Both the position numbers and the translations under genes were made by a program. Source: Lepidodermella squamata (lineage: Eukaryota; Animalia; Gastrotricha). Taken from it: DNA of 64,000 nt. Each line of letters begins with the position of its first letter. Within the stretch, counting starts at the first letter, position 1. Below, one piece after another: positions 12,810 through 48,793 of the stretch. The stretch spans positions 992,001 through 1,056,000 of the forward strand of contig JBLDXI010000029.1 in the NCBI GenBank assembly GCA_047495785.1, in the 5' to 3' direction. The notes under the pieces were generated by a model. It was given only the letters and a program-made list of their open reading frames with translations, had not been told where the DNA came from and ran no database searches.

Positions 12810-14198
12810 ATGAAACGGTATTACGAGTATCCAGAAGCATCGAGTGACCAGCAACAAACGGGCGAAAATGAAGACTTGTCACAGGCTAAAGATGACGATA
12901 GAACAGGTGTAATTTCCGAACCTGAGGCGAAAATCTCGAATGTTGGCTCGTCCCTCATAACGGGCGACTCGTCCGATCGATCTCTATCGGTGTCGTCAAA
13001 TTTATCCGGATCTTCGTCGGGTGTTGCATCCGCGCAATCAGGCCAGCAGGCCGGGGGGTCAGATCCGAACGGCAGAACTACGCTGTTCATCAGCGGTCTT
13101 CCCCAGGACGTGAAACCTCGCGAGCTCTACCTCTTGTGCCGGCTTATGTCGGGCTATGAACGCTCAGTTCTTCAGGTATTAATTGGCCACTATTGATCAT
13201 GAAGATTGATTGCTAAACAAGTTCACGTAACAATTGAGAATAACATTATTGAATCCGCAAAATTGTTTTTTTTTAATTTAATTAACCTGTAAACCTTAGA
13301 GGTCAATTTTTCAATTTTTTCAGCTTTCGAATAGCTATGTTTATTTTGACTAGGTTAAATCGGTTAAGCATTCTCCAGTTGGTTTCGTAACTTTCGCAAC
13401 TCGGCATCAAGCGACCTTGGCAAAACAAGCTTTGAATGGTGAATTTGATATCTTTTTTTATAGTTTCAGCTTCTGCCGAAGAGCCCTGAGAAAGCAAAAT
13501 AAGCCAGGACTTTGAGAAATAGTTGTTTCCATTTAGCGGGTTAAGAATTATTTATTTTCTTCGTTTTTGTCCGCGAAATTGACGCAGATTTACTCCATAA
13601 CAGAAAAGATTAGCAGTTAATAGCTCACCCAGTTTGAATCATGATTATTATCGCCGATTTCATGCAGGCTTAGTTGAAATCTTAATGGAATTTTAAAGGT
13701 GTGCGCTTTGACCCTAACGACTCGCGCCTCATGCGGGTAGAATTCGCCCGTAAACCAACGATCGATATCAGCAATAACAGTACCACAGCAATCTCAACCG
13801 GATCACCTCTCAACACTGGCCACAACGCTTTTCTGGCCAACAATCCATTGCTATCGAATATCGCCCTGCTGCCAACGCCTAGCAGCTTGCGGTCCTACGT
13901 TCCAGCGGGGGCGAATCAAAATAACAACCCGGTGACTTACTTGAATCTCGCTTCTTTATTACAGCAGCAAAATCAGGCGAATCAACAGAATATTGCAGCG
14001 CTGTTATCTGGCCACCCTGCGTTGCAATATCAACAGCATCAGAATTTGAGCCAGGGCGGCATTTTGTCATTTAATGGACTGCCTCTTCCGTCGCCAATCG
14101 CCTCGATGCCGAATAATAACTGCCCGGGCCAGATGGCAGGCGATGTGAATAACAATGGGGCGCAGAACGGCGCGTTTTCGTTTTTTCCGTTTCAGTAA
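12810..14198 (+). CDS. RBPMS: RBPMS/couch potato-like single-RRM RNA-binding protein
   Basis: Spliced [23 protein letters not shown]...[27 protein letters not shown]...MRVEFARK matches the RBPMS/cpo/MEC-8 consensus. Exons 12810-13175, 13354-13438, 13699-14198; N/Q/P-rich tail. Confidence 0.9.
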
Positions 14199-15236
14199 AC
14201 TTCCATGTTGTCTTTGTTCCATGTTTGTTCAATGTGCAGTATTGCGTACAAAGAATTTCTAGTTTTGCGTCTATTTTCCCTCGTTTTTGTGTTGAGGTCT
14301 TTCAAAGCCTTATGAAGGTGTAATTTGACGAATATTATTCGAGCAATAATCGATAAAGCGGCTCAATTTGGTACGTATATATTTCAGGAATGATGCTACC
14401 CTTAATGACTGGTCAGTAAATAACTTTGAATGACTTCCTATGAAACCAAGCTCAAATCCTATATGACGAATTCTAGAATAAAGCAAACGAATCTATATAT
14501 GTGTTTTTGTTGGAAATGTTGCAATTTTTTCGTGCTGCAAGTTGCGTCGTGAGTCGCCTGCTTGTGGGATTTTATTGATAATAAAAAGTTTGATAACGTC
14601 TTTATAATTTCACGGGCAATCCGATGGTATCGACAAATCGAACATTGAAGATGCGGAACTTGGTAAAAAAAACGGTTTGTCTGACAAGAGGACAAACTGA
14701 TCCTTGGACAGAAGTGGATCACCGAAATACGATAAAATACTCATTTTCGAGAGAAATCGGATACAGGTGTCTGGGCGGGACATTTTTGAATTCTTCAGAT
14801 TAAGTGTGCCAATAGGTAAATAAAGGGATAGAAACTTCGAACCGTACTCTGCCGTACTTTTCCAGCATCTTACTAGTGGTTTGAACCTCCTCGAGAAGAT
14901 CCTGAGCCGAAGGCCTGCCCTTACTTCGAAATGCCTCTTGCGATCCATTTTTCTAGTGCAGCAGATTGGCTGACATGCTGAATGTACAACATTATAGCCT
15001 ACAATTCAACACAAGGGGCAATAGTCTTGCCACTATAACCCGGGACATTCGTGGCATCCTTGAGCCATTTTTCCATTAACTTGGTTATCCCACTTAAACA
15101 GAACTTAGTCTTCTGAGGAGTGAAATTCGATTTTTATTTTATTGATGAACATCATATTTTCGCATAATTGTATATAAAAATCTGCAATGATTCGAAGTCT
15201 TTATTGGCTTCATTAAAGAATGCTGCAATGTTTTCA

Positions 15237-15797
15237 TTAGTAGGGAGCGGCGCCAGTCTCGACGGCGACGCTGTACGAGAAGTTGTTGGAGGCGGAGTAG
15301 CTGCCGCTCTTGTGGCCCTTGCGACCCTTGTTGCGCTTGCCGCCGAACTTCTTGTGGCCAGCCTTCTTGTTGAACTTGCCGTGACGCTTGTTTTTGCGGC
15401 CGCCGAACGAGCCCGATCGCGAATACGAGCCAGACTTGGACATGCGCTGGTGCACGCGCTTGAACTTCTTGGTGGACACCTTGCGGGTGTGCTTGTTGGT
15501 GCGAGCGGACACCGACGCGGACACCGACTTGGAGTACGAGCCGCGGCGCTTGTTGCGCTTCGAGACGAACTTCTTGCCGAAGTTCTTCACCGGCCGCTTG
15601 TTCTTCTGGTACGATGAGCCGCTCTTCGAGACACTGTACGAGTAGCTTCGGGAAACTTCCTTGTTTGGCCTGCCACGACCGGCTTCGGTCTCGGTGAAGG
15701 CTGAAAAAGAAGAAACAATGAATATTTGCCGAAAGCACTTGAATGCTTTACCAAGAGCCATGAGGATGGCAACAGCAATGGCACAAGCGAAACGCAT
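15237..15797 (-). CDS. Secreted cationic (Ser-X)n block protein, paralog A (~169 aa)
   Basis: Signal peptide MRFACAIAVAILMALA; phase-1 intron 15701-15751; mature chain K/R/S/G/F/Y-rich with SYSYSVSKS, GSYSKSVSASVS blocks; strong C/G-ending codon bias; TATA box upstream; paralog at 48317-48793. Confidence 0.85.
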   Translation of the reverse strand: MRFACAIAVAILMALGKAFKCFRQIFIVSSFSAFTETEAGRGRPNKEVSRSYSYSVSKSGSSYQKNKRPVKNFGKKFVSKRNKRRGSYSKSVSASVSARTNKHTRKVSTKKFKRVHQRMSKSGSYSRSGSFGGRKNKRHGKFNKKAGHKKFGGKRNKGRKGHKSGSYSASNNFSYSVAVETGAAPY

Positions 15798-15875
15798 TTT
15801 TGAAATGTTATTCAAGGTTTAAGCGAATATCAATTGGAAATCGAATATTGATGGTGATCGCGGGATGGGGCAGGA

Positions 15876-15882
15876 TTTTATA
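15876..15882 (-). promoter_or_regulatory. TATA box of cationic protein gene A
   Basis: Minus strand reads ccTATAAAAtcc about 80 nt upstream of ATG 15797. Confidence 0.6.
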
Positions 15883-16067
15883 GGGATGGCTAATTGGTTA
15901 GGCGACTTATAGCGTAATTGATATTTTTTGTTGTTAATTGAATTGAAATAAAAGGGAATCATTGGCTAACGATGGAATGGCGTAACAACGGAACCTCCCT
16001 CTTCTAATCCAAACCGAATGCCTAAAGTTCAAAGAAAACTAAATAATGAAATCAACGAATAAAAATG

Positions 16068-16139
16068 TTCCCTGACCGGGAATCGAACCCGGGCCGCCGC
16101 GGTGAAAGCGCGGAATCCTAACCACTAGACCATCAGGGA
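16068..16139 (-). tRNA. tRNA-Glu (TTC)
   Basis: TCCCTGATGGTCTAGTGGTTAGGATTCCGCGCTTTCACCGCGGCGGCCCGGGTTCGATTCCCGGTCAGGGAA; cloverleaf with anticodon arm CCGCG-CTTTCAC-CGCGG; T-run downstream. Confidence 0.97.
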
Positions 16140-16211
16140 GTGCATGTTTAGCATTGACGCTGTTTGACTGTAGAATAATGCGATCGAAAATAAAGCGATG
16201 AAAAAATGATG

Positions 16212-16284
16212 CGCCCTCCGGGGGACTCGAACCCCCGACCCTGTGATTAAAAGTCACATGCTCTACCGACTGAGCTAGGAAGGC
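16212..16284 (-). tRNA. tRNA-Lys (TTT)
   Basis: GCCTTCCTAGCTCAGTCGGTAGAGCATGTGACTTTTAATCACAGGGTCGGGGGTTCGAGTCCCCCGGAGGGCG; anticodon arm TGTGA-CTTTTAA-TCACA; T-run terminator. Confidence 0.97.
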
Positions 16285-16618
16285 CCTTGCAAATTAATGT
16301 AGCTAAGAATACATTGGGTGTGCATTATGTAAAACATGTAAAACATTAATTTTAATTTCTTAGGGCCAAAGCATGCTTCATCTGAAATTTGAATATGCAC
16401 ACTTTCATCGCGTTATTCTGAGCGTTTAATTGCACCCGCATAGATTGATTTGTCCATAATAATGTCATTCACCGTTATGACTCAGTCTCAAGATGTTGCA
16501 TTACCATGTTAAGGTAACTAATTCAATAAAAAAAACGTACACATTTGCTAATTTGTCGTGTTGTGAGCATCTAACTTGGTGTTGGGTTCATAAGTCGGAA
16601 TGCGCTAGTGAGCATTGT

Positions 16619-16995
16619 GGAGGCGGACAACGCGTGAGTACCCTTTCAAGATTAGCTGCGAGTTGATCGCTGTCTCCTCCGACCGGCCGATCCCCCAGCC
16701 TTTGTGTGTCTTGTCGTTGTAGGTCTCTTCGCGCTGTCGCTCAATCGAGTAGCGGTGCCGCAGCACGTCGCGCGACGATCCACCGATCGATCGAACGACC
16801 GAACGCTCGGCGACCAGTAAGCTTTGGCTCTAACTCATGGGTGTATGCTGTGTCTTCTAGGCTACCAACCAGTGCGCCACCAGTGCCTAGCGGTAGTTTA
16901 GCTCCAGACCTCCTCTCTCTCCCTTCCATATCGCCTCCACCAGCGGTGCCGTGGGCCTTGGCTACCAGGAGCTTTGAGGCCGGCGCCCTTCTTTT
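16619..16995 (+). ncRNA. RN7SK: 7SK small nuclear RNA homolog (~377 nt)
   Basis: 5' GGAGGCG (16619) pairs with CGCCTCC (16932-16938), forming the basal closing stem. Paired GAUC motifs TTGATCGCTG...CGGCCGATC (16663-16692) resemble the 7SK HEXIM-binding stem. The 3' hairpin GGTGCC..GGCCT..GGCT/AGCT..AGGCC GGCGCC is followed by CTTCTTTT (Pol III end). TATA-like cataag at about -30. Confidence 0.8.
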
Positions 16996-17740
16996 GCGAT
17001 TTTTTCCAATTATTCAAAACGCTGGAATGATTCGCTCCGGTCCGAGAGCAACTTAAAGTTGGAGGCATGTTAAACAATAAATCCTGGAAATTGCTAATCC
17101 AAATTTTGGCATTCCTAGCGCATTTCAGTAAATGAGGGACATGCAGCATAAGAAACATTTCCCAATCGGGATTCGATGGGTGCGGAAATGAGCGTTGACC
17201 TTTGAATGAATCTTTTATAAGCCTGAAATAGCCGACGATTTTTTAGCCGCGTCACGAGCTTCACCATTTACTGAACAATTTCTTCGCGCGTCGAATAGTG
17301 CCCTTTAAACCGAGAGTTCTGGCCCCGAAATTTCAATTCTGAATTACCTATGAGCTTTATAGCGCGGCTTCAGCGCGATCAACTCGATCTTGCAGCAGCT
17401 GCATTCTGGCTATCAAAACAGATACTTCATTTCGATGAGCAGCTGAAGAGTTGACTGGAGGGCTGACCTCTGAAACAGCGCACTTTCTGATGTTGATACC
17501 AGTTTCGCTAAGAGGTTTCTGAATCGCAGGCAGCGGCGTTCGCTTACTTCTAGCGAATTCGAAGTTGCAAAATTTGCTAAAAGATCAAGCAGCGTTGGCA
17601 CGGGAGTAGACCAAGGTACGGAATTAATACCGGGAAAGTCGTAGAGGACGGCTTCAAAAAAGGTGACGCAAAATTCTCAGATGAATTTCAAAGTATTCAA
17701 GAACAATCGGAGAAATCGGTGATAATATTAAGATGCTTAA

Positions 17741-17838
17741 TCGCGTCGAAACTTCAGACGGCTGCCTTCGGGTAGTATTGTCGCGTTTCGGTGGTGACTT
17801 TTTGGCGTGCCAATATCATCGACGGTGATGCGGCATGC
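17741..17838 (+). ncRNA. Unnamed structured small RNA with Sm-like site (SL RNA / SmY-like candidate)
   Basis: Hairpin capped by a C(UUCG)G tetraloop (GCTGCC-TTCG-GGTAGT) inside a long imperfect stem 17741-17797; ACTTTTTGG Sm-like site 17797-17805; second hairpin GCGTGCC..ATCATC-GAC-GGTGAT..GGCATGC. Many G-U pairs favour the + strand. The 5' end is uncertain. Confidence 0.5.
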
Positions 17839-17901
17839 GGCCCGGCAAAGGCAAAAGCAGGTTTTTATTCGTTTCTCTTCCCAGCTTTGATGCAAAAATG
17901 T

Positions 17902-17983
17902 CGCTGCCAGTAGGATTTGAACCTACGCGCGGAGACCGCATCTGATTTCAAGTCAGACCCCTTAACCACTCGGGCATAGCAGC
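17902..17983 (-). tRNA. tRNA-Ser (TGA)
   Basis: GCTGCTATGCCCGAGTGGTTAAGGGGTCTGACTTGAAATCAGATGCGGTCTCCGCGCGTAGGTTCAAATCCTACTGGCAGCG; long variable arm, G discriminator, anticodon arm TCTGA-CTTGAAA-TCAGA. Confidence 0.96.
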
Positions 17984-18126
17984 TTGGTTGGATTAATGAT
18001 GTGGAGTTCATATCCCTATATAAAATGAGGCATAAACCAAACATTTAACACAGCTGCAAGCTCTTTATTGAAAATAATGACACAACAAACACCTTCTTTA
18101 TTGAGAAACATCACATAATTGCATCT

Positions 18127-19380
18127 TCAAGAGGCAGGTGAAGTCTTTTTCAGCTTCTTTCGAAGAGTGGCAGTGAATTGCGAAAGAGATTTGTTCTTCT
18201 CGAGGGCGATTCTAAACCTCGACCCGAGAATCTGACAGAGATTAGCCAGCACCATAGCTGCAGCAAGCACAACAACCCTACCCAACTCATCTTTGGGCGC
18301 CCACATCACCCTCATCAATTTAGTTTGAAAATCGTCGTAGTAATCAGGCGGCAACCTGTTGCGAAATATGAAAGACGTCGCTAGACCTTCGGATGGATCT
18401 GTGATCGTGGCAAAAGCAATAAGCAGATTCGCTGTATTTCTACAATCAGCCAAAAGCGGTGAAATGGGCTCAAGAATCCTCGTGACGCAAATGAATGTCA
18501 AATTGCTGATATCAGGTGAATCCTTCAATTTGACCCTGTCAGCCGGTGATGCCGCGGCTTTTGCCAAAGCAAGCGCAATCACTCGGATGACATTGTTATT
18601 AGCCTCTTGAACAGGTGGATATGTCTTTTCCAGCAGAGTCACCTCTGTCATTAGGCTTATCATGTGCGTGAAATCGTGGCGACCCATAAAATTGATGAAT
18701 CTACGCACTGGCATTATTGCAATGTCAAATTCTTTGCGAGAGTTATCCGCACACAAGTTGCAAGCCGTCATTATCACCGGCTTTGCTTGAACGCTATTTG
18801 TCTCTTCGTCGCACAGAAGATGGCAAATCAGCGTTGTAAGCGGCTCGGCGCATCGCGCTGCAGACAGCAGATTGTCGTAGTGCCTGCCGTATTCCGGCCA
18901 TTTAACGCCAAGAGATTTGAAGACAATAAACGACATGTAACCTGCACGTCTATGCAAATCGGTTTTCTGAGGCGATTTGAACACTAACATCGCCAGTTTC
19001 GGTATGTAGTGCTGGTAGAACTCTGGAACCGCGATGAAATACTTGCCAACCAATTCCCAACGTTCATCGTCGACAAGTTTCGCTAGGCAAGAATGAATCA
19101 CCAGCTTGTCAATTGCACTTGGAATTTCGTTATCAACAGCCTCGATGTCCATTGTTTTACTGGGTTTAAAAATGCTTTTCACAGCGGGATTCGGTGAAAA
19201 TCGGTCGATGAGAATCATCGAACCTATGCATTCGGTCCATTCATCCATGCTCAGCCTGCCGTTTAGAATAGAATCGGGGTTGAATCTAGCTAAACATGCG
19301 TGAGACATTCTCAGCAGCTCGGCATCCACGGTAAAATCTGGGACAGGTTCGAGCGCAGGATCAAAATTCCGGAACGCCAT
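18127..19380 (-). CDS. Uncharacterised ~417-aa protein, probably alpha-helical solenoid
   Basis: Long uninterrupted ORF with normal composition and amphipathic helical segments; acceptor-like tttag 12 nt upstream of the ATG; AATAAA signals downstream. No family recognised. Confidence 0.7.
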   Translation of the reverse strand: MAFRNFDPALEPVPDFTVDAELLRMSHACLARFNPDSILNGRLSMDEWTECIGSMILIDRFSPNPAVKSIFKPSKTMDIEAVDNEIPSAIDKLVIHSCLAKLVDDERWELVGKYFIAVPEFYQHYIPKLAMLVFKSPQKTDLHRRAGYMSFIVFKSLGVKWPEYGRHYDNLLSAARCAEPLTTLICHLLCDEETNSVQAKPVIMTACNLCADNSRKEFDIAIMPVRRFINFMGRHDFTHMISLMTEVTLLEKTYPPVQEANNNVIRVIALALAKAAASPADRVKLKDSPDISNLTFICVTRILEPISPLLADCRNTANLLIAFATITDPSEGLATSFIFRNRLPPDYYDDFQTKLMRVMWAPKDELGRVVVLAAAMVLANLCQILGSRFRIALEKNKSLSQFTATLRKKLKKTSPAS

Positions 19381-24210: not shown

Positions 24211-25779
24211 TCAGTCGAATAAACAGCCGCACTGCCCACTTCTCAGCGTTTGGTCAAAGTCCGAAAATTCCAAGTATTGTTTCACAGGGTCAGGTAGGTA
24301 CTGCTCGAGGCCGATGTGGATCGCCTTGTGCCGCACGTTATAGCCGATTGGTAATCGGTTCAAAATCGCCCGCCGACATAACGATTGCAACGAGACTGTC
24401 GGCGATCGCAGTTCGGCGACCAATCGCGTACAAGCCTTGCGAAATTTTTTCACGACGCTGTTCGATTTATTCGTCTGCTGCGGCGGCCTGAAAGCGGCTG
24501 GTAGTTGAATACCATATCGAACTAAAATAGAATAAATAATTCATGAAATAATTTTTGAAATCGAAAAATAATTGAAAATATCGATTTTTGGTGCTGTTCA
24601 AATACATCCGATTATTGATGCTTATTTCAGGCAATACGATTTTAAGCGAGTGTGAGCCGATTGAGCAGACGCCTTTCAATCCCCGACATGTTGGCCAAAG
24701 GCCAAAGCGGAATCGAAGACCTCAAAATTGCAACAAGTATCAGCCCTGAAATCTTCGTACGCAGAGAGACCCCATCCGTCTAACGCGCATGGCAACTACA
24801 ACCAACAACTGGCAAACTGCGACTATCAGAGCCCCAGAGGCAACTAAGGCTTCAACGGCAAGGGCAAGCAACAAGGCCAAAACGGAAAACATCGGGACCC
24901 AGGGTACACCTCACAAGATCCGCGATACTTCGAATTTGCCGAATTTATTGTAGCTTTCGATGATAAATTTGGAAATTCTGGATATTTCTGTAATGAAACT
25001 TTCGGGCGAATTAATTACCGTTAATCTTGAAATATGAAGCAGCAGTTTGGAAGGTATGACAAGGCCCGTAAATTATGGCTATTTCGAGATTGCATTTTTG
25101 AGATTTTTAGGCATTGAAAATTTATGAGCCCGGGCTGCTATTTCAAAATTTATGGCAGTCATAATCGGTTTCAAGTAAGAAGTAAGCACGGTTTGAAATC
25201 AATGGAGACGAATTCGAAAAATTACGAAATTCGAAAAACCAAGTTTTCACGATATTTCAAGCTGATCTCACCTAATTTTAGGACGATATGGAAATTGTAG
25301 CCAAGCGCAGCAGCGTTGAACAGCGATTGCTGGCGATTTGAGCCGAAAAATATTTGCGGAGGCAATACAGGCAGCAGTGTATCAAACGGCAAACAGTGCG
25401 ATTCTGAGCAAGCGAGCCAAAAACTGAACTTCATGCGCTGCGTCGAGTGGAAGAATTGCTCGGTTTGCCGGGCGAATATCAACTTGAAAATCTCCTTGCC
25501 CACCGGTTCATTTCGACCAGACTCAACAATGGCGATGTCTAACGCGTGAAATTGCAGAAAATTCGCGGCCACATCGCAGGAAGCACCGTTTTCGAGCAAG
25601 ATTTGCACCACATCGACGAAGCCGTTGCGGATCGAGTCATGCAAGGCTGTTCCGTTTGACAGGCGAAAGTTAGGCGACGCCCCGGCTAGTAATAATTGGC
25701 GACACTGCTCTGCATCGCCACGCCTCGCTGCGTCTATTAGTGCGTGGTCGACGGAAAATTCAGAACTGCTCTCATCCAT
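24211..25779 (-). CDS. Ankyrin repeat and SOCS-box protein (ASB-like) 2
   Basis: Exons 25779-25272 and 24521-24211 in phase 1. Ankyrin repeats LIDAARRGDAEQCRQLLLAGASPN, GTALHDSIRNGFVDVVQILLENGA; SOCS box VSLQSLCRRAILNRL...LPDPVKQYL. Confidence 0.85.
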
Positions 25780-26845
25780 CTGCCAACTAGCGCTTTTAAT
25801 CACGCTTTAATGCGTCTAAATTGGAAAAATATTGATCAATAACGGTTATAAAATTTGGGAAGTACATGTAAGAATGGTTTCATTCATAGTCTACAAAAAC
25901 AAAAGCGCAAAAATTCGTTGCTTATTGTGAATGCTATTGTAATTCAAGGTAGAAAATATTTAAAAACTAGCGGAAATATTAATCGTTGGCTTTGATACTA
26001 TACAAATCATCTTGAACGTTAAATGCAATAGTCTTGCGATAACTAAACCGAAAATAAATAAATAAGACTGAAATAAAATGGTAGAAACTAAAAATTCGCC
26101 ATACCCTTACTGCGCTTTTACTGCGATTTTCCCAAATTCATAGCTTAGCCAGGGTTCCACAAAAAACCAACACCCGCGGCTCATTTTCATTCCCGTCGAT
26201 TAGCTATTTGAAACTGTCCCATATGACGCAATTAATTGAATAACGTACAAACCATTCAAAGGAGTCTTGAGAAGCTTGAGAATTTCAACGATTTAAAAAT
26301 AAACATAGCTGAGAAGAAAAATTTCGCGTATCGAATGTCCGCTGATGATTTAATCGCTAATTTAAATGAACTGCGAACAAACAACACGCGGCTGATTTAA
26401 ATAGAGCTACAATTATTCAACAATAATCCATATTCAAGCTAAATACCTTTTTCAACTCCAGACCATTTCGCAGTATCTTCATCATTTTACCATCCGGCTT
26501 AACGGACTAGAGGGCTCGAAAAATACCGCCTGAATAAATGATCAGAATCTATAGAAGGGCAGCGTCTTATATTTGCCAGTATATCTAAAAGCTGCTCCCG
26601 AAAGTTTCACGCGTCATTTTTAGCCATATTTGGTCAGGCGTGTTTCTCATTTTTGCATCACCCTTATTTGTCATGCGAATTATACTAACGTAAGTGTAAG
26701 TAAGCAAACATGATTCAGCCACGGCAAAAAACTGCATTAGGTATAAATTATACTGTCTTTATCACTTTCTCAATTTTTATCGTTATATAACGCGATGATT
26801 AATCACAATACAATTGCACCATAAATTATTAGAAGCCTGAGTTAT

Positions 26846-28416
26846 TTAGCGAGGTCGAAAAGGCGCGGTCGGGGGTTGGAGAGGGCCTGGTAGTGGCGGC
26901 GCGGCTGATGCCGATGGCTGGCTAGAGACCACAGGCGGTGGTGGGGCTAAATTCGGCGTGTGTTCCGTTACCGGCGCAACTGGGCTCAGCTTGAGACACC
27001 CTATATCGAACCCATCCCCGCAGTGCTGCGCGACAAGGTCCAGCAGCTTCATTTTCCGTACATCAGCCGTATTTGACTGGTGAAGTTCGTACATGGTCGA
27101 TAGATTGATGAGCAGTGCCTCTGTTGCGTAGACGGCTGGTTCGGCGAATAGCGCAGCTTCGAGCCGGTCGATGGCGGCTTGCAACCGACCGGAATACATG
27201 ATTGAAACTGCGACGCAAGTAACAGCCTGAACTTTTAAGGCGGATTCTGGGGCTTTGTTGTAGGCCTGCTCGAAATGATCCGTCGCATCGTGAAACTGCC
27301 CACCAGCCATGGACATATAACCTAAAAGGCATATATCACTGTCATTTGATAACCAAAATATTTAAGAGTCCACTCACCGGAATGAAGACTAGACAAAAAA
27401 TCGCCGAATTGTGTATTTGTCTCGGCTCGTTTGAAATACATCTCCGCAAATGGGAGACAACCAGATTGTAGAAACGCCCTTCCCGCTAAAGCAGCAACCC
27501 TGCATCGCCTCGCGTCAATCTCCTCCTTAGCAGGCAGTAATTTTACGAAAACATCATGTGATTCTCGGTAATTTTTATGAGCAATCAAAACGTTAGCAAT
27601 CGCGAATAGAATATCCTCCCGACGCCGCTGCCAGACCTGCCGAATCTCCGCGTTTTTCTCGTCCAATTTCGACAAAATCCGGTCGACTGATCGTAATAAA
27701 TATGACAACCGATCTAAAGCTTCGGAATTGCGCTGCAAAAATTGAGGCAATTGCGCGTGTAATAATCGAGTTGAAAACGGCACTAGACTAGTGAAAGATT
27801 GCGGGATCAACTGCGTAAAATTCGACGCGCCATTCAACTCGCCGTGAAATTCCTGGTACAAATCCGGGTTATCGAAATTGTTAAACGCCTGCATTTCAAT
27901 CTCAGCAACGCCGGCTAGATTAAGGCGGACTAGTAACGAAAATCGGCATGACCAAATCGCGTGGTCTTGATCTGATAGCCACGACATAGAACGAGGCGCT
28001 AGAAGTTCCGAGGTCAAATTTAAAGCGGATCTGAAGCATCTAGCGGCTATCAATTGCTTCAAGCCCGCTGTATCTTTCGAAACTTGAGTAGCGTTTGGAA
28101 AATTTCGATTCGAGATGGCTTCTGATCGATTTCTAAGCAATAACTGATCTCGAATAGGATCGCCCTGTTTCTCGGCGTAAACAACCGGGACAGTTCGACT
28201 TGACGCCACGTCTGGTTCGTCGCGGCATGACGGCGATTTTCGAACACGTTCGATCAAACTGGCGGTTTCTAGGCTTGGAAACCAAAGTTTTTCGGCGGGA
28301 TTCGGTGAAATTTCGGTGTTTTGTTGAGCGGCCAAGTCGACATTTGAACTGCTCTGGGCGATTTGCGAGAAAATATCGTCGCCAGAATCGGCGAAATAAC
28401 TCGTTATATCGGACAT
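26846..28416 (-). CDS. TRAPPC12: Trafficking protein particle complex subunit 12 (TTC15)
   Basis: GLKQLIAARCFRSALNLT, AEIEMQAFNNFDNPDLYQEF, SLVPFSTRLLHAQLPQFL, TPR region and LLINLSTMYEL...GDGFDIGCLKL. Exons 28416-27378 and 27321-26846. Confidence 0.93.
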
Positions 28417-28791
28417 TTAAAATCCCTACGAAGAGAATAATAATTTTAAATAGTGAATAAATTAAAAAAATGTCACCTGAGTAAACTTATCTAAGACGTC
28501 AAAAATTTCCAAACCAATTAAGAATTAAGAATGTTTGCCCTCGAAAATTATTTTCTAATCGTTTTTCCCGCTATTGAATTATTCTATTTACGCCAACCGT
28601 TCACACTTAACTTGACTTTTTATAAAAAAAAAACTCGAGATTAATCAAGTTGAGACAGCCCATTATTATTATTCCACTTAGTTTCACTTCATTTTTGAAA
28701 ACACATGCTACGCGCCACTGTATTTTAGATTTTTTCACAACTTTTTTCAGCATCATGGAATTTTTCATTTTTATCAATTGTGTGGAAGAGT

Positions 28792-30942
28792 TTAGTAGCC
28801 GCCGAAACCGGAAGCGGCGACCATGTGCATGGTCTGCTGGTTCAGCGCGCTGTCCAAACTAGCGCCGGGCGTGCTGACTGCCGCGGCAACGGTCGACAGG
28901 GCTTGCGGCGTCGTGATTCCCATCAGCTGCAGGCGTTTTTGAATTTGGCCCACCAGCGACTGCGCCTGTTGGCAGATGCCCTTCGTCAGATCGACGAGTT
29001 GGTTATCAGGCGATGGCAGCTCGGTATTGATGATGACCAGCCCGTTTTGCGAGTCGATTTTCGCGTCCTGGAAATCCGGGTCCGACGTGATGAGCTTGAC
29101 AATCCACCGCTCGGCCTCATCCGGCGTCAAATTCAACTTGGCCGCCATGTTGCGAATACTGATCGTCTTGTGCATGCGGCAGAAGCTTTCGAAAACGAGC
29201 AGACGCGCGTTGTCCATGAACTGCTCCTGCAGACCGCACAGGAAAAAGTCATTCGCCAGGACCTGTTCGCAATCGCGCAGCTTCAGTTGAGCCTTGTCAA
29301 AGTCGAAATTGACGTAGAGGCACTCGACGAACTCGGTCACCGGGTCGTGGTAGTTGTATGCCTCGGCCTGGATCAGCTTGATCAGCTGCTTCAGAACGTC
29401 TTTCCTACGATCGCTGGTGATGATCGCGGCGGTGATGTAACGCAGCACGTGTGGGCACATCGTTTGAACAGCGTCGCAGTACGGCGTGTTCGGCTGTTCA
29501 CGACGGTCTCTGAAAAAATCACAAGATAGAAATAGAAAAAATAAATCAGAAAAATGAGAAAAATCGTTAATTTTAAGGAGGATTTTGACAGGAAAATTTG
29601 CTAATTGCTTTATGCAACCAACTCAAATTCAGTATATGGCCAAATAATCAACGTATTTGTTTCCTATAGCCGCCCGGGCCACTAAAACTTCAAACTCGAA
29701 ATTTTGAAAAATTCAAAAATTAGTTTTGGCGAATAGTTCATTTTTTATTATTTCGATCCGACTTGACCCCTCAACCCTGGGCTACCATTATGACGATTAT
29801 TGGCGACTGGGCTACTATTGGAACAAACATTACATATGAGGTGTTATGCATGCACGCCTGGCACCCCTGATATAAATGTTAAAACTCAGGAAATGTGAAG
29901 AAAAATCAGGAAATTATATTTCCCATCTTTGCTCCTAATTTCAGAATTTTTCAAGGGAATCATTCGAAAAAAGTTATCCTTCGTTACGGTCATGAGTCAG
30001 AATAACGCTAATTTCAAATTCCCAACATCTGGTTTCTCAATTTGCGAACAATAGCTATTTCAAATGCTTCAAATTTTTTATTCAATCGACCATGGCTTTT
30101 TAATACTTACCCAGAAGACCTGAAGAACATTTCAATGATGAGCTCTGGGCCACGGCGGTGGTTGAAGTAGACGAAGAGGCTCCAGTGAATGAGCCAGGTG
30201 CGGTAGTGCATTTGCAATGCCTGAGAAGCACGTGGCATGTTTTCAATTTGATCGCGCAACCGGTTAAGATTGTCAAGAGCACCGTCCCAGTTTTGGCGCA
30301 GAATTTCAGCGGCCAAGTTGCCCCAAAGAGCGGGAATCGCGCGTTTATCGTCGCTCGACACCAAGTTGCGGAAAATAGCCAACTGCTGAACGGCAGCGTC
30401 GTAGTTACCGCATTCAAATGAGAACTTGGCGTACTGGTAGATTTCAGATAAAACATAATCCAGCTTGAACTTGTATTGGGTTTCCAGGAAATCAATCACA
30501 ACGCGCGGGTCGCGCTGTTGCATTTTGGAACGGCCTTCTTCACTGATGATAACATTAATAATGGGTTCACAGCGAGTTTTCAGCCCTTCGAGCTGCTCCA
30601 AGATCTCAGCGCGCTTTTTGGCAAAAGCTGTTGAAAATTAATCATAAATTAGAGAATCACAATGTTAAATAGCTATATTACAATCAGGCGGTGGTTGGTC
30701 AGGGTAGATAGTTTGGAACACCTCGACGGCGTGGTCAACCATGTTGGTTTTCTCTGCGAGCTTCAATCTCGCGATGAGAATGTCTCTTTCGTCGTAGATC
30801 TAAAACATCAACAAGTCAAGTTTCGGCAAAACATAATATGCTTAAAGCTCACCTCTCGAGCGGAGAGAAATTCGAAAAGAGGAAAGACCATGTGAGGGTC
30901 CAAGTATCGAGCGATTTTTTGGGTAAGATCGTAATCCACCAT
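28792..30942 (-). CDS. EIF3E: Eukaryotic translation initiation factor 3 subunit E (INT6)
   Basis: [83 protein letters not shown] domain. Exons 30942-30853, 30799-30682, 30627-30111, 29509-28792. Confidence 0.97.
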
Positions 30943-32189
30943 TTTTAAATGCTCTAAAATGTATTGAAATCAATAAAATTCATGATTCACTGGTTGTAGC
31001 TGACGCTACCAGCGCCACTCCGCGGATCGAAATGTTTTTTTCTATCTAACTTGGATGCGTTGTACAATTTCATTACTGACTTACTCCTCCCCTCGGTGGA
31101 AAATATATCTGGATTGTTTGCCCGCCGATGCATAAGTGCAAACTTTGCAACGTACCAACACTACTCGCTGGGCTGACAAACAGAAAGCTGTTGACAAGCT
31201 CTCGGAAATCTTGCCTCACGTTCACACTGCGCTGATCTAGATCACCAAGTAAAATAGATATGACGCCGCTAAAGCACAAGGCCTTACTACTAGCACATCC
31301 ACTTGGTCATGCTACTTCATTTCTGGCAGTTGGTCTTGTCGCTTGTCAAACTAATCTCCGTCAGCTAGCAGAATCCTAAGTTTGACATTCAACAAGCTGC
31401 TAGCCTGATATAATCGCTGTGTCAAGCTTTGACTACAGAAAGAGACATTCTTTAAGACTGTGCCATGTTTTCGTGATTTTAGGGGCAAGAAAATCATTCG
31501 CGTTTTATGGCGGAGAGGCGGATTCCGCCGCTATCATTCAACCGACCCCTGCCTCGCGAAAATGTCTAACGACTGGCATTAAGCTATCGATAACGGCTTA
31601 AATGTAGCAGTTAGCTCAACCCCGCCGGAATAATATCATCCTTAAGAAGCGCAGAATTCGACGAACACTCACTTGACCTTATGTCAAGCTACTTCTTAGG
31701 GCAAAACAAATAACCAAAATCAAATTAACCATCCCGGCATTTCATTTATCCGCCGCTGAGAAAAGGAGGTTCGCAATCGTCAGCTTTACAACAGGGCAAA
31801 AGGCGTACAATGGAATGCTGATACGGAAGCACTTGGTGGTTCATAATGCGGTATTACCCTTCAATTAAATCGTTTGCATTTATCGGTAATCAGAAAAGCA
31901 GTTGAGCGTCGCCCTCAACTCGGATGCAACGCTCCTTTAAGGTTTGAGCTGTTGAAGCTGAGACATCATGCCGCCATCGATGTTCGCCGGAATACTACGC
32001 ATTCTACTGGCCATAAAAATCTGTATGACGTTGCTTCACAACTGCACCACAGTGACGAATTGATCGCTACTAAGGAGCCGCTGTTTAAATCAAGTTTTCT
32101 TTGATAAGCTTTATTTGGTTTGGAAACATTTGTTTAATATTTAGATGTGACTTGCTTCAATACCGCAATCAATAAATAGCGCCGAAGAC

Positions 32190-32273
32190 GTCCCTCTCCT
32201 GAAAGATGCTGCTGCAGATCGCGAACGTTGGAAAGCTGTAGTGAAACTCGCGGCCTCCTCTATGCAGCGAAAT
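32190..32273 (+). mobile_element. 3'-terminal remnant of an RTE-type non-LTR retrotransposon ORF
   Basis: Translates LLKDAAADRERWKAVV, resembling the A-x-DR-xx-W-R/K motif that ends RTE-clade ORFs. Confidence 0.45.
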
Positions 32274-34021
32274 ATTTTAACTAACATGAACACTAATAAT
32301 ATAACTACTTAGATGCGAGCGTAGCTGTCATTGTGACGGCGAATATAGAATGGGCTCGCGAATGTGGCCTGGACGCGGGCGACCGGCGATTCACGCTAAC
32401 ATATACAGCCTGACAGCTCGTTTCCAAAAGAGAAATGAATGCGATAGAAGATTTGACAAATTGACTCGGACGAAATTCTTCAATGTTTAAGCCCAGATCT
32501 CACAGCCACCACGGAGCTTATTAACCGTGAATTTTGCAGGAAAACCTCAACGTTCGGCGACTGAAACAACGCGCAACGCGTTCGGAAGAATGCTTCAACT
32601 TCTGACAACTGACAACCTCTCCAGAGACGTTGAAAACAACTAGCGTAAACCGGCTTGGATACAGATACAGATAGACCGGCTTGGAAGAAAAATACTTGCG
32701 ACAGAAAAAAATGCGCGCCCGAGTCAGCATCAGACGACCTACACAATATTAAAATACAAAATTCTGTATCTATCAAGTAATTATTGTTTTTAAAAAGTAG
32801 CGAAGCTCTGTAGTATTATTTTTGGAAAATATTTGAAAGGCAGTGATAAGGGGTCATGCAAGGGGTCTGTTTTTGTGATTTTGTTCGATTTCGGGCTTCC
32901 CAACCCCGGCTTTCTGGTTGAAGTAGTCGGGTAGTCGGGATGCCTGGCATCAAGTCATCCATGTTCCATGTTGATGGGGTGCATTGGAGTGGCGGGGATC
33001 AAGAGCCATCGACACCGATTTAATTGCAACGGGTGCTCTGTGCTATTATTATAACGAATATGCTATCATTATACAGTATTTTTGCGATCTGCCTTCGTCA
33101 ACACCAAGTCCTGCAAGTCGTCAACATCCACTACCGTTGCTGTAGTCTGTACTGGATTCGGCGGAACTAGAACGTTCTCCAGCTGAATTCGTTTACCAAT
33201 ATTCCCAGACTCGTGGGCTCCATCGCGGAACGTAGCAATTATATCCTCCAGTATAGCAGTACAGGCATATTTCTTAGAATCTTTTGGGGAATAGAAAAAC
33301 TCTTTGCCAATCCGCCGCGCCCGCCAAAATGTCAATACTAATATCAGCCATTCTTAGACCTAAATATAATTCGCCGATTTTTCGATTTTTTTCGAAACCA
33401 CCTGATAAGCAGTAGCGATTTTGCACATTCCAGTAGAAGATGAAGGAAATTGGTCGCAGCCGAGTCGACAGGGCGATCAAAACTAAATAACGGGTGAGAC
33501 GAGCCGTAGTACTCACTTACTTCGCGCTATTATTATATCTGTGCTACTATAGCATTTCAAAGTCGGCCCGCCGAATCACCCTCATTGGTGGCTCGGGACG
33601 ACCTTCAAAGCTCTTTTTACTACACAGAGTGTGACTTCTGGACTGTTTGCAGCAAATAGAGGTAAGCAGCTCCAAGTTCTAAGACCTTGGAACCTGCAAA
33701 AGTTTGATCCAACCATGCTTAACAATTGAAACAACATGTTTCCTTGGTGGGAATTCCGGGATTAAATGGGTACTTGATTGATCGAAGAAGTGCTGATGAG
33801 GTTCCATAAGCAGCGAGGTTATACGGTCTGTTTCGTTCATGTTTTTCATGCCACTGACTTGCGTCACTAGGCGCTCTGCAATCATATGAGAGATTCAAGT
33901 GTTGAAATAGGATTCGATAGGCTTCTGCCCACTGTCTTACTACTGTTTTTGTATCTTGTATCTGCTTCTTGCTATTCATGTCTATGATGCCATCTTTTTA
34001 GGCATTTGAAGTTGAAAGAAA

Positions 34022-37000
34022 ATGTCGGAGCAGGTGACTCTGGAGGACGCAATTAGAAATGCGTCTCTCCTGGAGCTTTTTTCTAGACCTGACCACCAAC
34101 CATCAATAGAAGCGTGCCATCAACCGATTCGATATGTTGAAAACTTTCACACGGCGTTCAAAGATCGAGTTTACTTTGTCGGACCCCTGCAGAAATTCCT
34201 GCCAGACGCTGTAGACATAGCAGAGATCGACGAGTTTATCGACGTGGGCGAAAAATTCGCGGCCGAGCTTTACACTTGGCGAGCTGTTTCTCGCGGTATT
34301 CCACAGGTGGGTCTGGCATTATTACAGTATAATCATTCTTGTAATTGATTTTTTTAGGTTAAGTCAAACGATGATCCGAACAGGAACGAAAATTACGAAT
34401 TGACGGTTGAGGTTCTTGCTCCTGAAGTTGACAAGTTGCTGAAATTCATGGATTTCTGCGACCTCGCTGTTTCTAAATTTGTCGAAATTTTGCGACGATG
34501 TGTTGGTCAAACGGAGCAAAAGTCTTCAAAGAGCTCGTCATCTAACCAGTCTCGGCGAGAATTCGTTTCCGAAACGCTGCTGATCCGTCTAGCTAAAATG
34601 CTAGACATGTTTTGCATTCTAGACGAATTGAAACGTATCAAGTCATCGATTAAAAACGATCACGCTGCTTACCGTCGCGTTGCTCAATTCAAGAGAATTA
34701 TGAATGATCGCGAGTCAGTTGAGAAGTCTCAAATGCTTGCGATGTTTTTGGCGACCAATTACGAGATTTCAAATCGATTGAAAAATTGGCTGTACATCAA
34801 AAGCAACGATTTTGATTTCACTGAGATTCTGTGCGAAATAGCCAACATGTGTGCGACTCAATTTGAAAACGAATGCTTCATCTTTCCGAGTGAAAAGTTC
34901 ATGCTAGTTCGTGTTATTGGGTACACCTTATACATTTTAAACGGATCTGGAGATCCGAGTCTTGCGTATAAGCTTGATTCAAAGAAGAAGCTGCTTCAAC
35001 TCAACCGTTTCGACAAAATTTTCAAGCAAATGGAGGTCGTCTCATTGTACGGCGATATGCAACTCGACCCGTTCCAAAACTACGTTGAACACTCGCCTGA
35101 ATTTGACGCCTCGTTTTGGCCGCTGAGAAAAAGTTCATCTCAATCACCCCAAAGCCAACGCCTTGCGTTGAAAATCCAAGAAGTCAGGGTCGAATTTAGC
35201 AATTTACTCAACGATTTGGCCCGCTTGAAGAACGAATACGTTGTTTGCAATGTCGGTGATAATGTACTACAATGGCCTGATGAATACTGCCACAGAATTG
35301 CTAATTTAGCTATTCAAATCATTCGTTCAATCGGAGCTTGGAATTGCTTAGTAATGGAGACTTTTTCGTGGAAATTGGGCTACCCAACTGACCATCGGTC
35401 TAACCCAGCGTGCCCTCCGGATGACAACTGCGAGCAGTATGAAAGAGCTACGAAATACAACTTTTCGCCCGAGGAAAAGTTGAATATGATTGAGTTGATT
35501 TCGATGATTAAATCACTGCAGAGTGCCACTCATGGAGTTCGTCGGCTGTTTTCAGACGGAATTCGTCGATTTTTGTATTTATCGATGCAAAACTTTTCGC
35601 AACTTGTCCTCCGCGAGCCATTGCGGCAATGCGTTAAGAAAAAGCGAGATTTACCCCGGGCGTTGATACAAGCTGTTCGTCTAGCTTGTTCCGACTGGCT
35701 GGGAGGCTGTGAACCGGCGAATGACCCAGCTTTACGCGGCAAAAAGGACGAACCCGAGCGCCGATTTGAGATTAAAATCGCGAAAAGAGCGGTTTATCCA
35801 AGCGTTACCCAAAGTTACCTACTCAGAACTGCCGTTGAATATCTCGCTTACGAAAAATCGATTGGGAAGGCGAAAACCTTGCGTAAAGAATGGGACCCAC
35901 AGGTTTTGCAACTCCTCGAAACGTTTCAGAAGCAGTCAATCTACTGGCCGTATTTGGTTCAATTAGACCAGAGTTTAATTGATTGCGCTGATTTGAGCCC
36001 GCTTTGGTTCCGCGAGTACTTTTTGGAGCTGACCCTCGGAAAATCGATCCAATTCCCAGCCGATTGCTCGCTGCCATGGATTTTAGCCGATCATATCGTT
36101 CACACGCGGCATCCGACTCATTTGGAAAATCTGCTCTACATTTTGGACTTGTACAACGATTCAGCCATGTTTGCTCTCAGCAAATTGCGAAAACAGTATC
36201 TCTACGACGAAATCGAGGCTGAGGTTAACCTGGTCTTCTCACTGCTGTTGTACAAATTGGGCGAGCAGATTTATTCGTACTTCAAATACCTCGCTGGTTG
36301 CATTTTGTTGGACAAACGTTTTCGAAATGAATGCGCCCAAAAATCGGCCTATCTGCCCTACCCACCTGTCGTGCGATACAAGAGCCTAGTCGCCCAACAC
36401 CATGTCCATTTACTCGGGCGGTATATTGATTTGAAAATGCTGCTGTCTCAACGAATCAATATCGCTATGTTGAAGTCGTTAGATACTGCGATTTCGTTGT
36501 TTGAAGCCTCCGATCTACCGAATATTGTTGAATTAGAGGCGCTGATCGAACTGAATCGATGCGCTCATCAATTGTCGAGTGAGTTGTTCTCGATCATTGA
36601 TTTCGACGATTTGTTAGCCGAGGCTGATGATGCGGTTAATAAACCGATCGGGCGGATTGGCCGTCGAATTATCGGAGTTACAGTCGATTCGTTAATCAAA
36701 AGTTACTGCTACAACGGGTCGACTGAGCGATTTGTGAAAAGTGCCTTCAATCTATCGAATTTAACGTCGAATTCCGCCGCGTTTATGGAGGGAAATCGAT
36801 CGAGGCTTCTCGAATCTACCCCGCCTCATCACCTGTGGGGCTCAAAGGCGTTGAATAAGGCGTTTTCTGAGATTTTCTCGCGGTATTCCGGCTTTGTTGG
36901 ATCGACGCATTTTCGCTTGATGGCGCGATTTTTGGGCTACAACGGCATCGCGACGTTATTCACGCATTTCCTCGAGCATGTTCAAAACGATTTATCACCG

Positions 37001-38667
37001 TCATACACGCAAGGTGAAGCGACTTTGTTGGACCATTTGCGAAATTTGAAGTCAGTCCTGCCGCAGTCTTGCCGGTTGCCTCGGCTCGATTTCGGCGGTC
37101 AGGCGTTGATAACTCGTTATGAAGCCGCCTTGAAAGATTTGATCGCCTGCCCGCAACATTTGGCAGTTTTCGGGTATCTTCGGGAGTTTGGTAATACCCT
37201 GATTGTCTGCATTCATCTCGAGCGTGCCATGAATTTCGAGGAGGTATTCGATTTGAAACAAGCCGGTTGCTTCAATAATATCCTACCCCGGCCGTTTGTT
37301 CCGGTTAAGGACGGCGAGTCGCGGAAGGACCACGATCTAGCTGTGAAAGCCGCGATGAGGCAACAGGAGTTGAAATATCGACCATGGCATGTTTTGGGCG
37401 TTGTAAAAGCGCATTGTTCGAAGGTAGAGGCGGATTTGGCTGAGCAGGCTGATGTCTTAACCCGAGAGCGGCTATGTTGTGGTCTATCGCTGTTCGACAC
37501 GGTGTTAGTCCGGGTCAGAAATTGCCTTCAAGACCCGTTCTTCCGCGGAAACGGCGCGCCTGGTTCGATTCTGCCGAGTGATGACATGTCGGAATTTCAC
37601 CGATTTTGGTCGTCGTTGGTTTTCGTCATGTGTATCCCGGCGCCGGGGTCGCAAGAAACTGTCGAGTCGCTGTTTGGTGACGGGCTAATTTGGGCGGGTT
37701 GTTCGATTATTTCTCTGCTAAACCAGCAGCGGCGGTTCAAGGCGTTGGATTTTTGCACGCGTATCCTGGCGGCAAATCGCTTGAATCCGCACTCGTCGAC
37801 GGGCGATGACGAGCCGGGCGTGAATAAATCGACGAAAACACTGACAGCTGGTATCAAGTTGGAGAAAATGATCGAAAGGTAAATGGAAATTCCATATTCC
37901 ATTATTTTTCATTTTATTTTCATCTACCTAATTGAATTAATTTGAGATTTTTTAACTTCGGAGGCTGAGATATTTCACATTTTCGGTTTCATTTAGCGAT
38001 GATAGAACGACGGATATAAAATGATATTTCATGGGGGAAATGTAGAAAATTAACCAATAATTTTGCTATTTACGTTGTAATTCACTAATTTATATCCGTC
38101 GAAAAAAACGAGTTGATCAAGTTTCTGAAGCCTGTCTATCTTAAAATCTGTGGTAATGTAATCCAGCGCTCCAAATTCTTAGCAATGACTGATTTTTCGC
38201 TAGGTTTAGTTTTACATTTTCATAATTTTCGAAAGTTGGTAGCATAATAGCATCGTCTTTATTTGGATTGAGATGAGATTTGAAGATGGATACAAGATTA
38301 GGATAGGCACATAGATTTTGCGAATTTTGACTTATAAATCTAAGTCTGAAGGGGGCTCACAGTTTTTGCAATTAATAAATCGAATTTTGTGATATTTCCC
38401 CTTATTTTTTAATTCGTAGGTAGGATTTTAGGGATATTTTAAATTTTAAATTCACAGAGCTATTCAATATTTATTAAGTTAACTGTAATTTTCTTGTATT
38501 TCAGAATCCGATCCTATCTGCGAATTCACGACGAAGTTTTCTCTGTGTTCGACACGCATTTGACGCGGCTAAACGGCGGCGGCCCAACCGGCGGACCCGA
38601 GTCATCGATCGCCCAGGTCGAGTTCATCCCGCCTCCAGTATGGAACCCGCAGTCGCAAGATTTCTGA
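34022..38667 (+). CDS. CYFIP: Cytoplasmic FMR1-interacting protein (Sra-1/PIR121; WAVE complex)
   Basis: MSEQVTLEDA, LYTWRAVSRGIPQ|VKSNDDPNR, LDELKRIKSSIKNDHAAYRR, YERATKYNFS, LWFREYFLELT, QYLYDEIEAEVNL, LTRERLCCGLSLF, EFHRFWS. Exons 34022-34306, 34358-37878, 38505-38667. Confidence 0.97.
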
Positions 38668-39101
38668 TCATCAAAAGAATAAACGAAATCGCGATTTTTG
38701 TTAATAATTTTGTTCGTGTTCGCTTTGTGACGTCGCAGCTTTTGTAACACAAGACAAATTATATCAGCTTTTCAAGTCGCTTCATTACTTCTCATTAGTA
38801 TTACCGCTATTACGTTTCCGGTAAATTCCACTCGTCCAGTGCTTTGTATAACTCGAAAATCGGCTCAAAATCTACGCATTGAAATTTCCAATTACGTGCT
38901 TGATGCTTGCAATTTTTTCGTCTTCCGTCTCTTTTTTTCATCTCATATTGTAATTTTGCTGTCTCGAAGACACCAAATAACGTTTATGTAGTAAAAATTA
39001 TTGCCAATTTATACGATAAATAAATTGACATTTTATTAATACATTTTTCAATTTTTCAATTAGAAAATATTTAACCCCAATTTTGTTGTGTGCTCGCGTG
39101 A

Positions 39102-40585: not shown

Positions 40586-41269
40586 AATTTTAGGCTGTTA
40601 TTTTAAGACTCGTCTTGAACTTTGATTCGTTGCTCTTAACTCAATAAAATATGATAATTTTTGACGTATTTCGTGTGGTGTTGAGAATCCCGTGAGAAAT
40701 CATTGGTGGGGGAACCTTTAAAATGGCGAACCAATACCTATGTTGAAAATGCACACGGATAACGGATAGATCCTGCTGCGCCTCCGCGAGAATTCGGGAC
40801 TGTAAAATCCGGAAGTGAGCTGTTTCCATCATGGCCTTGCGTTATACCATAAAATGTACAAAGGTTGTGTTTATGCTTTATGCCATCTTTTCGACTTTCT
40901 TCGAAATATGGACAAATCCTCTTAGTTACTGCTCAATTCGTTTTTTTTTGTTTTTCAAAGTTTTTTTCGTTTATTATTCGAGGGAGGCAATTATTGAGCT
41001 GGAACGTCACATCAACACTTTAATCAAGCCCTGAGTGATATAATCAACATCCAGGCTGGCCTGGAAGGCTTTCCAGGTTGGCCTACCTCCTAAAGCTTTC
41101 AAGCAGTAGTCATTCCGCAGTCGGAAAAGCTATCCCTGGTCATTTCAGGCCACTAGAAAATTCTAAAATTCGGTTCCGTTAACAGCATATTTAGTTCCGA
41201 TACAGCAAATTTGGTTCCGGTAACAGGAAGACCCTTTTCCAGGCTTCAACCTGTTTTTTCCGCCGTAAG

Positions 41270-45292: not shown

Positions 45293-45535
45293 CTGGCTGG
45301 TTGTTGGCCACCGTTGACGGCAAACGGTTTGGCATGGTGCCGAAAAATTACCTAGCGCCGCCGACGCTGAGTGGCAATCAACAGGTGGCTGTGGCGGCGG
45401 CTGCGTTGAACAAAGATTCCAGTAGTGTACCGTCGGGGCCGTCTCTCGGCGATTTCACCAACGATGCATGACATTTTTGGCTGTTATTTTAAGAACTCAA
45501 TAAAATATGATAATTTTTGAATCCCGTGATAAATC
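45293..45535 (+). pseudogene. Duplicated 3' fragment of PEX13 (half SH3, stop, 3'UTR)
   Basis: Near-identical to 40407-40701: 2 substitutions in the coding part and two short deletions in the UTR; no upstream exons. Confidence 0.93.
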
Positions 45536-48226: not shown

Positions 48227-48234
48227 TATATAAA
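48227..48234 (+). promoter_or_regulatory. TATA box of cationic protein gene B
   Basis: gggTATATAAAttg about 85 nt upstream of ATG 48317. Confidence 0.6.
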
Positions 48235-48316: not shown

Positions 48317-48793
48317 ATGCGCGCTATTCTCGCCATCGCTGCTGTTGTCCTGCTTGGACTTGGTAATTGCTAAACGCCTTTCAGTTTTTTCTCATTTTTT
48401 TTAATCTTATTCTCATTCTCCCCAGCCTATTCCGAGGCTAAGGTGTGGAATGTCGAGTCGAAGGAGATGCACCGCAACTACCACAAGAGCGTCAGTACTT
48501 CAGCGAGCCGCTCGTTTGAGAATAAGAAGGCTTTCCGCAAAGGACGTGCCTTCCCGATGAAGAAGCGCCACGGCAAGAAGTTCGGCCGCAAGATGAACAA
48601 ACGCCGCGGCTCCTACTCGAAATCGGTCTCCGTTTCTGTCTCGTTCTCTGGCAACAAGCGCAACTACGGCGGCCGCAAGTTCGGCCGTCATGGCAAGAAT
48701 TTCGGCAAGAAGTTCGGCTACAACTTCGGAAAGGGCAAGGGCAACAAGAAGGGCTCCTACTCCTACAGCAAGTCGGTCAGCGCTTCAAATTAA
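48317..48793 (+). CDS. Secreted cationic (Ser-X)n block protein, paralog B (137 aa)
   Basis: Signal peptide MRAILAIAAVVLLGLAYSEA; phase-1 intron 48363-48425 at the same position as in paralog A; shares NKRRGSYSKSVS(V/A)SVS; AATAAA downstream. Confidence 0.87.

Follow-up and report, generated by a model that had tools for sequence, protein, structure and literature searches.

A candidate family of secreted, serine-striped polycationic structural proteins in the gastrotrich Lepidodermella squamata

We read a short gene of the gastrotrich Lepidodermella squamata (gene A) and its paralog B as belonging to a family that is restricted to this lineage, has been amplified for gene dosage and encodes secreted structural proteins. 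The material that they build would be extracellular and made in bulk, with egg shell and cuticle as the likeliest candidates; we give this reading about an even chance of being correct. Both genes lie in the stretch of 64,000 nucleotides that was analysed (contig JBLDXI010000029.1, positions 992,001 to 1,056,000; GC content 43%), called the window in the following, and all positions refer to it. Our search of the literature brought up no protein from the cuticle, the egg shell or the adhesive tubes of any gastrotrich. The gene A family thus offers specific probes for a phylum that is unstudied and has the flatworms among its close relatives. As the protein is short, Cys-free and easily made, the idea of its self-assembly is directly testable; if it holds, alternating-serine blocks would have been reached independently once more among aquatic secretions.

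Gene A consists of two exons on the minus strand and extends from the ATG at 15797 to the stop codon TAA at 15237. The intron (GT..AG, 15751-15701) is in frame, stop-free and in phase 1, and the spliced product comprises 169 amino acids. An unspliced open reading frame of 192 amino acids was set aside and the spliced form preferred. A preliminary description of this DNA had placed the gene at the same coordinates and had reported a clear TATA box, which is present as TATAAAA at 15882-15876. We infer that the CATCAA element downstream of it is likely to be the start-site region. Table 1 gives an overview of the features of both genes.

Table 1. Positions of gene A and paralog B features within the window
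Feature	Position	Strand	Basis or remark
Gene A			
TATA box TATAAAA	15876..15882	-	sequence; 85 nt before the ATG; matching position in paralog B
CATCAA element	15848..15853	-	~29 nt downstream of TATA start; common to paralog B
Coding exon 1 (46 nt)	15752..15797	-	first 15 residues of signal peptide; run X1 shows a related exon joined to exon 2
GT-AG phase-1 intron (51 nt)	15701..15751	-	X1 contig departs from genome at 15701
Coding exon 2	15237..15700	-	signal-peptide end (to 15681), 147-aa polycationic mature chain and TAA; X1 contigs 97-99% identity
Ser-X block 1	15615..15653	-	residues 32-44
Basic cluster NKRR and Ser-X block 2	15507..15554	-	residues 65-80; best-conserved part between paralogs
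Ser-X block 3	15408..15440	-	residues 103-113
Ser-X block 4 and alternating continuation	15261..15308	-	block 4 = residues 147-153
Putative polyadenylation signal AATAAA	15200..15205	-	sequence; 32 nt past stop
Paralog B			
TATA box	48227..48234	+	sequence
Signal-peptide exon	48317..48362	+	
Intron, 63 nt, phase 1	48363..48425	+	intron position same as in gene A
Exon 2	48426..48793	+	three Ser-X blocks, one ending Ser-Phe-Glu

Judged by hydropathy, the N-terminal 22 residues resemble a signal peptide, with a hydropathy peak of 3.1 followed by the small-residue pattern T-E-A at positions 20-22. The mature chain of 147 amino acids is rich in Ser (19%), Lys (18%), Gly (12%) and Arg (11%), followed by Asn and Val (7% each) and Tyr and Phe (5% each). 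It contains two Glu and no Asp, Cys, Leu, Ile or Trp, has a pI of 11.7 and carries a net charge of +41; Pro accounts for 2% of the protein. The preliminary claims of a signal peptide and of a Cys-free, almost non-acidic mature chain agree with these data, and all four of the (Ser-X)n blocks that had been quoted are found in the protein. Within these blocks 23 of the 28 serines keep a strict alternate register. S-x-S occurs 20 times compared to 5.1 ± 1.8 times in shuffled sequences (maximum 14 in 100,000 shuffles), while adjacent serines are depleted (1 vs. 5.1 expected, p 0.016). Segregation between Ser/Tyr/Val/Ala stripes and Lys/Arg/Gly/Asn/Phe spacers is strict: Tyr is concentrated in the blocks, Phe is confined to the spacers (0/7 in blocks), and Lys plus Arg make up 12% of the blocks and 36% of the spacers. 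AlphaFold models of the two paralogs showed no fold (pLDDT 49 and 58); with near-zero alignment depth behind the models, this absence of a monomer fold is weak evidence for a disordered chain.

Paralog B (48317-48793, plus strand) shares the layout of gene A as well as the phase and position of the intron, with TATA and CATCAA elements at matching distances. The two proteins show 42% local identity over 142 columns, the best-conserved stretch being the basic cluster followed by block 2, and S-x-S is again in excess in paralog B (15 vs. 2.9 in shuffles). Outside the coding region no alignable flanks were found between the two loci. Within the window, a 202-bp direct repeat (98% identical) occurs at 40407-40608 and 45293-45494, 4.9 kb apart, and an imperfect palindrome of 143 bp (43028-43170) is followed by two tandem copies of a ~203-bp unit (43404-43810). 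A MITE-like inverted repeat of ~48 bp (84%; 47608-47655 and 47845-47892) bounds a 285-bp segment upstream of paralog B.

Two sequencing runs were used for analysing transcription and copy number, one from 2015 that is probably RNA (X1) and one from 2024 that behaves as DNA (X2). X1 contigs on exon 2 are 97-99% like the gene A locus, more distant types being present as well, and none covers the gene A intron or promoter. One of them, contig 8, tracks exon 2 to exactly 15701 and then continues in signal-exon sequence: the continuation reads ALAVAVLVAL and matches exon 1 at 22 of 30 positions and the intron at 5 of 30. This contig is a spliced transcript of a close relative of gene A, perhaps from another locus. 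Of the spliced transcript asked for in the preliminary description, the splice at the predicted acceptor (15701) is thus seen for the relative in a probable RNA run.

In a partial list of coding differences among the copies, 14 of 23 are synonymous compared to 23% of sites (p 1e-4, dN/dS ~0.19), including all four of the listed differences at block serines. Judging from these differences, the gene A family is under purifying selection. Furthermore, the strong codon bias noted before was confirmed: C or G ends 0.94 of the two-fold codons in gene A, the strongest bias among the 18 ORFs compared and the highest in the window, while 16 further ORFs there reached 0.39-0.71 and the translation factor eIF3e 0.61-0.71. 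The depth of the probable RNA run over gene A was modest. Since contig depth cannot rank genes, it is codon bias, and codon bias only, that suggests high expression of gene A. In run X2 two haplotypes of the gene A 3′ flank were found at depths of 45 and 42, and single contigs over exon 2 at 669 and 3152, which is ~15x and ~72x the depth of one haplotype. These values suggest tens of gene copies, amplification bias and contig collapse making depth a rough hint.

The regions next to gene A were also inspected. Adjoining upstream are tRNA-Glu(TTC), tRNA-Lys(TTT) and tRNA-Ser(TGA), within 16067-16284 and 17902-17983; beyond these tRNAs there is no Rfam match at E 0.1 in 13500-18500. A link of gene A to the neighbouring tRNA-Lys(TTT) was dismissed, as 26 of the 27 lysines of gene A are encoded by AAG. 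The 3′ flank (14608-15092) has diverged copies elsewhere, and a 476-nt contig of the probable RNA run matches 14924-15092 at ~88%, the same variant being present in the DNA run. On the plus strand this flank contains short, stop-interrupted frames that gave no Pfam match; the flank may have arisen by decay from one copy of a repeat or multi-copy gene. At a greater distance, an ENA metagenome contig from a related organism (L001) aligns to 25276-39490 with ~70% nucleotide identity and keeps the order of CYFIP, eIF3e and ankyrin-SOCS. It ends ~9.5 kb short of the gene A position. CYFIP (34400-37882) is mostly one open frame of 1160 codons. eIF3e is 94% identical between this contig and the window over the matched part. 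Among named animal proteins the best are ~56% identical to it, and just two environmental sequences are closer.

For database searches exon 2 was used as the query, the 15-residue exon 1 being too short to search. Gene A had no match in Pfam or among PDB sequences and one match at noise level in NCBIfam (E 0.059). A search of 5.8 billion proteins with exon 2 and with the alignment of both paralogs, which sees lengths of 0.55-1.75x the query, gave none either. The same applied to the ESM Atlas (both paralogs), to JGI metagenome contigs searched by protein and by DNA pattern, and to a literature search for four core octapeptides. The sole match of an exhaustive HMM search (P0121, E 4e-14) was rejected as compositional: it is a read-through of a long tandem repeat, contains Cys, Leu and Ile, and lacks a signal peptide and serine stripes. 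Its source (L003) is a 98-kb contig composed of long ORFs that lie back to back along the repeat and read through it. A full-length match to a known family with another function, against which the preliminary description had set its own reading, was thus not found in the libraries searched. The gene A protein appears to be an orphan, although in these collections a missing match is weak evidence of absence when the gene is from an animal, contains introns and is of low complexity. Invertebrate genomes commonly encode secreted basic proteins of low complexity that are orphans. As a class, secreted cationic block-copolymer structural proteins are already known; it is the sequence that is orphan.

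The many near-identical copies together with purifying selection indicate a product that is needed in bulk. The animal is parthenogenetic, lays large shelled eggs and has a scaled, protein-based cuticle. For such an animal the gene dosage is more easily reconciled with shell or cuticle than with a few adhesive gland cells. We therefore place the gene A product somewhat more readily in egg shell or cuticle than in glue, although sequence does not separate the three. The preliminary description had proposed an adhesive, silk or mucus protein. Its picture of a real, spliced, secreted, conserved and orphan protein, probably made in bulk and with the design of a self-assembling material, holds; its choice of material and its assignment to a gland are less secure, because the many near-identical copies fit shell or cuticle at least as well.

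According to the mechanism that we propose, the protein would be stored as a soluble, self-repelling coil, its spacers repelling each other. On release its charge would be cancelled, either by phosphates attached to the serines of the chain itself or by a polyanion, for which a sulfated glycan and an acidic or phosphorylated partner protein are the candidates. The neutralised chain would condense, helped by cation-pi contacts between Lys/Arg and Phe. Stripes of 7-13 residues could then stack into intermolecular beta-sheets with one face all serine; subsequent tanning between Tyr and Lys or His is speculative. As 9 of the 19 X positions in gene A blocks are Lys, Arg or Gly, the second sheet face would be only weakly hydrophobic, so that self-assembly is predicted with caution. 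With all serines phosphorylated at -1.5 each, the calculated net charges of the two paralogs are close to zero (-1 and +2.5). Canonical priming by FAM20C uses S-x-E. Gene A has no such site, so that canonical priming would be absent there; paralog B has a single one, where a block ends. In a bolder version, which we consider less likely than not, the family provides the main structural protein of an undescribed gastrotrich material (scale cuticle, egg shell or glue). This material would be built from short charge-frustrated chains with serine stripes like a natural K2(SL)6K2 peptide, turn cross-beta on neutralisation or phosphorylation, and need neither cysteine nor collagen nor chitin-binding domains. 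If so, it would be, as far as we found, the first structural material of the phylum to be defined molecularly.

Another explanation, which we consider rather unlikely, starts from the adhesive tubes that gastrotrichs possess: gene A would encode a cohesive component of their glue, or of mucus. Its product would act as a polycation like the Gly/Arg/Lys-rich flatworm proteins Mlig-ap1 and ap3, attaching to a glycosylated partner until a polyanion releases it. The spacers of the GRK type keep such a flatworm-like glue in play. In flatworm glue, ap3 consists of a signal peptide and a low-complexity GRKHS chain (88%), and the KR regions of ap1 give cohesion that is blocked by heparin (PMC9229212, PMC6410801, PMC6745481), which supplies the precedent. 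Tmed-ap3, Mile-ap3 and the KR regions of Mlig-ap1 combine a signal peptide with a domain-free, extremely basic G/R/K/H/S chain, a design that gene A resembles in part; these five residues make up 63% of the gene A mature chain (88% in Tmed-ap3). The kinship of gastrotrichs to flatworms (PMC6468455) points in the same direction as the adhesive tubes. Nevertheless, flatworm glue proteins are thousands of residues long, and gene A with 169 amino acids is ~25 times shorter and shows no sequence match to them. Serine stripes, which the available parts of these reports do not describe for flatworm glue proteins, Phe and the multi-copy state further distinguish gene A from ap3 and ap1, and tens of gene copies would probably be more than a handful of gland cells require.

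An antimicrobial or surface-defence function, in which the polycation or fragments released at basic sites bind bacterial envelopes or trap bacteria in fibres, appears quite unlikely. The net charge of +41, the multi-copy state and the layout of two exons with a signal peptide, as is typical for families of defence peptides, are in line with it. The helical moment of some 11-mers is high (0.80 in A and 0.86 in B), but compared to shuffles this is not exceptional in A (p 0.10) and marginal in B (p 0.035). Hydrophobic residues amount to 17-21% with no Leu or Ile, selection is purifying and not diversifying, and the conserved part is the serine stripe instead of the helix-like spacers.

It is very unlikely that the chain acts as a phosphorylated polyampholyte for metal binding or mineral templating, like caddisfly fibroin or silaffin, or as an egg store of phosphate and nitrogen. 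The charge would balance if all serines were phosphorylated. We know of no mineralised structure in this animal. Caddisfly H-fibroin has (SX)nE blocks of alternating serines with Val, Ala or Tyr at X and Arg-rich bounds (PMC13267644), and alternating serines flanked by Arg clusters occur in gene A as well. Hydrophobic residues (A, V, L, I, Y) occupy 10 of 19 X positions in A and 10 of 15 in B. However, no block of A (0/4) and one block of B (1/3) ends in Glu. Without S-x-E, the unit that defines caddisfly blocks, the phospho-serine mechanism previously borrowed from caddisflies is not supported for gene A; paralog B has one such unit. Moreover, H-fibroin is a giant repeat chain with G/P/L spacers, whereas gene A has 169 amino acids, K/R/G/N/F spacers and no Leu. 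The hexamer KSGSYS is common to the diatom silaffin-1 R5 peptide and gene A, both Ser/Lys-rich (PMC3806462). Shuffles that preserve the blocks remove the significance of this match (p 0.39 for the shared word, 0.67 for the alignment score), which composition and pattern explain, and identity as a silaffin was rejected; the RRIL-type motif is absent from the mature chain, which has no Leu or Ile.

A precursor of short amidated signalling peptides is highly improbable: Gly followed by a dibasic pair occurs four times in each paralog (p 0.04 in A, 0.02 in B) and one furin-type site R-N-K-R-R precedes block 2, but cleavage would yield mostly non-repeating scraps of 1-6 residues, acidic spacers are absent, and many gene copies with extreme codon bias are atypical of neuropeptide precursors. 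The FG-KK, KR and RR sites on which the propeptide alternative had been based do exist, yet dibasic pairs stay at the level expected from composition (14 vs. 12.3, p 0.32 in A; p 0.19 in B), which weakens this alternative. Limited furin cleavage that frees single stripes is compatible with the structural-protein reading.

Among known material proteins, the precursors of flatworm egg shells (Schistosoma p14/p48, Fasciola vitelline proteins) are small, secreted, low-complexity, Gly/Lys/His/Tyr-containing and made in bulk, and in these respects resemble gene A. They are much richer in Tyr (DOPA), have no serine stripes and show no Pfam or sequence match to it. The cement proteins Pc1-Pc5 of the sandcastle worm carry poly-serine runs with Tyr, or Tyr-rich Gly/Lys repeats. 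The earlier comparison with them is not sustained, as the serines of gene A alternate instead of forming runs, S-S is depleted and Tyr reaches 5%. As defining features also failed for fibroin, ap3, silaffin and neuropeptide precursors, gene A belongs to none of these. Closer in layout is barnacle cp19k, in which four STGA blocks alternate with charged blocks and which forms amyloid fibres (PMC10410215). It likewise is a small secreted block protein with four simple Ser/Thr/Gly/Ala blocks between charged ones and a proposed beta-sheet self-assembly, and the alternation of simple Ser-rich with charged blocks is found in gene A. This likeness was set by block layout, database searches giving no match that would indicate homology; gene A differs by strict Ser-X alternation, purely basic spacers with Phe, lack of Leu and Ile, and tens of copies. 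Designed K2(SL)6K2 peptides, which form antiparallel beta-sheet nanofibres (10.1101/2024.03.07.583938), share the alternating-serine core flanked by lysines and are the closest physical model for each stripe unit. They are synthetic, whereas the X face of gene A is mixed (Y, V, A, K, R, G) and each chain carries four units. By its sequence gene A would thus be a member of none of the families compared, and by analogy its product would work most like cp19k and the designed K2(SL)6K2 peptides.
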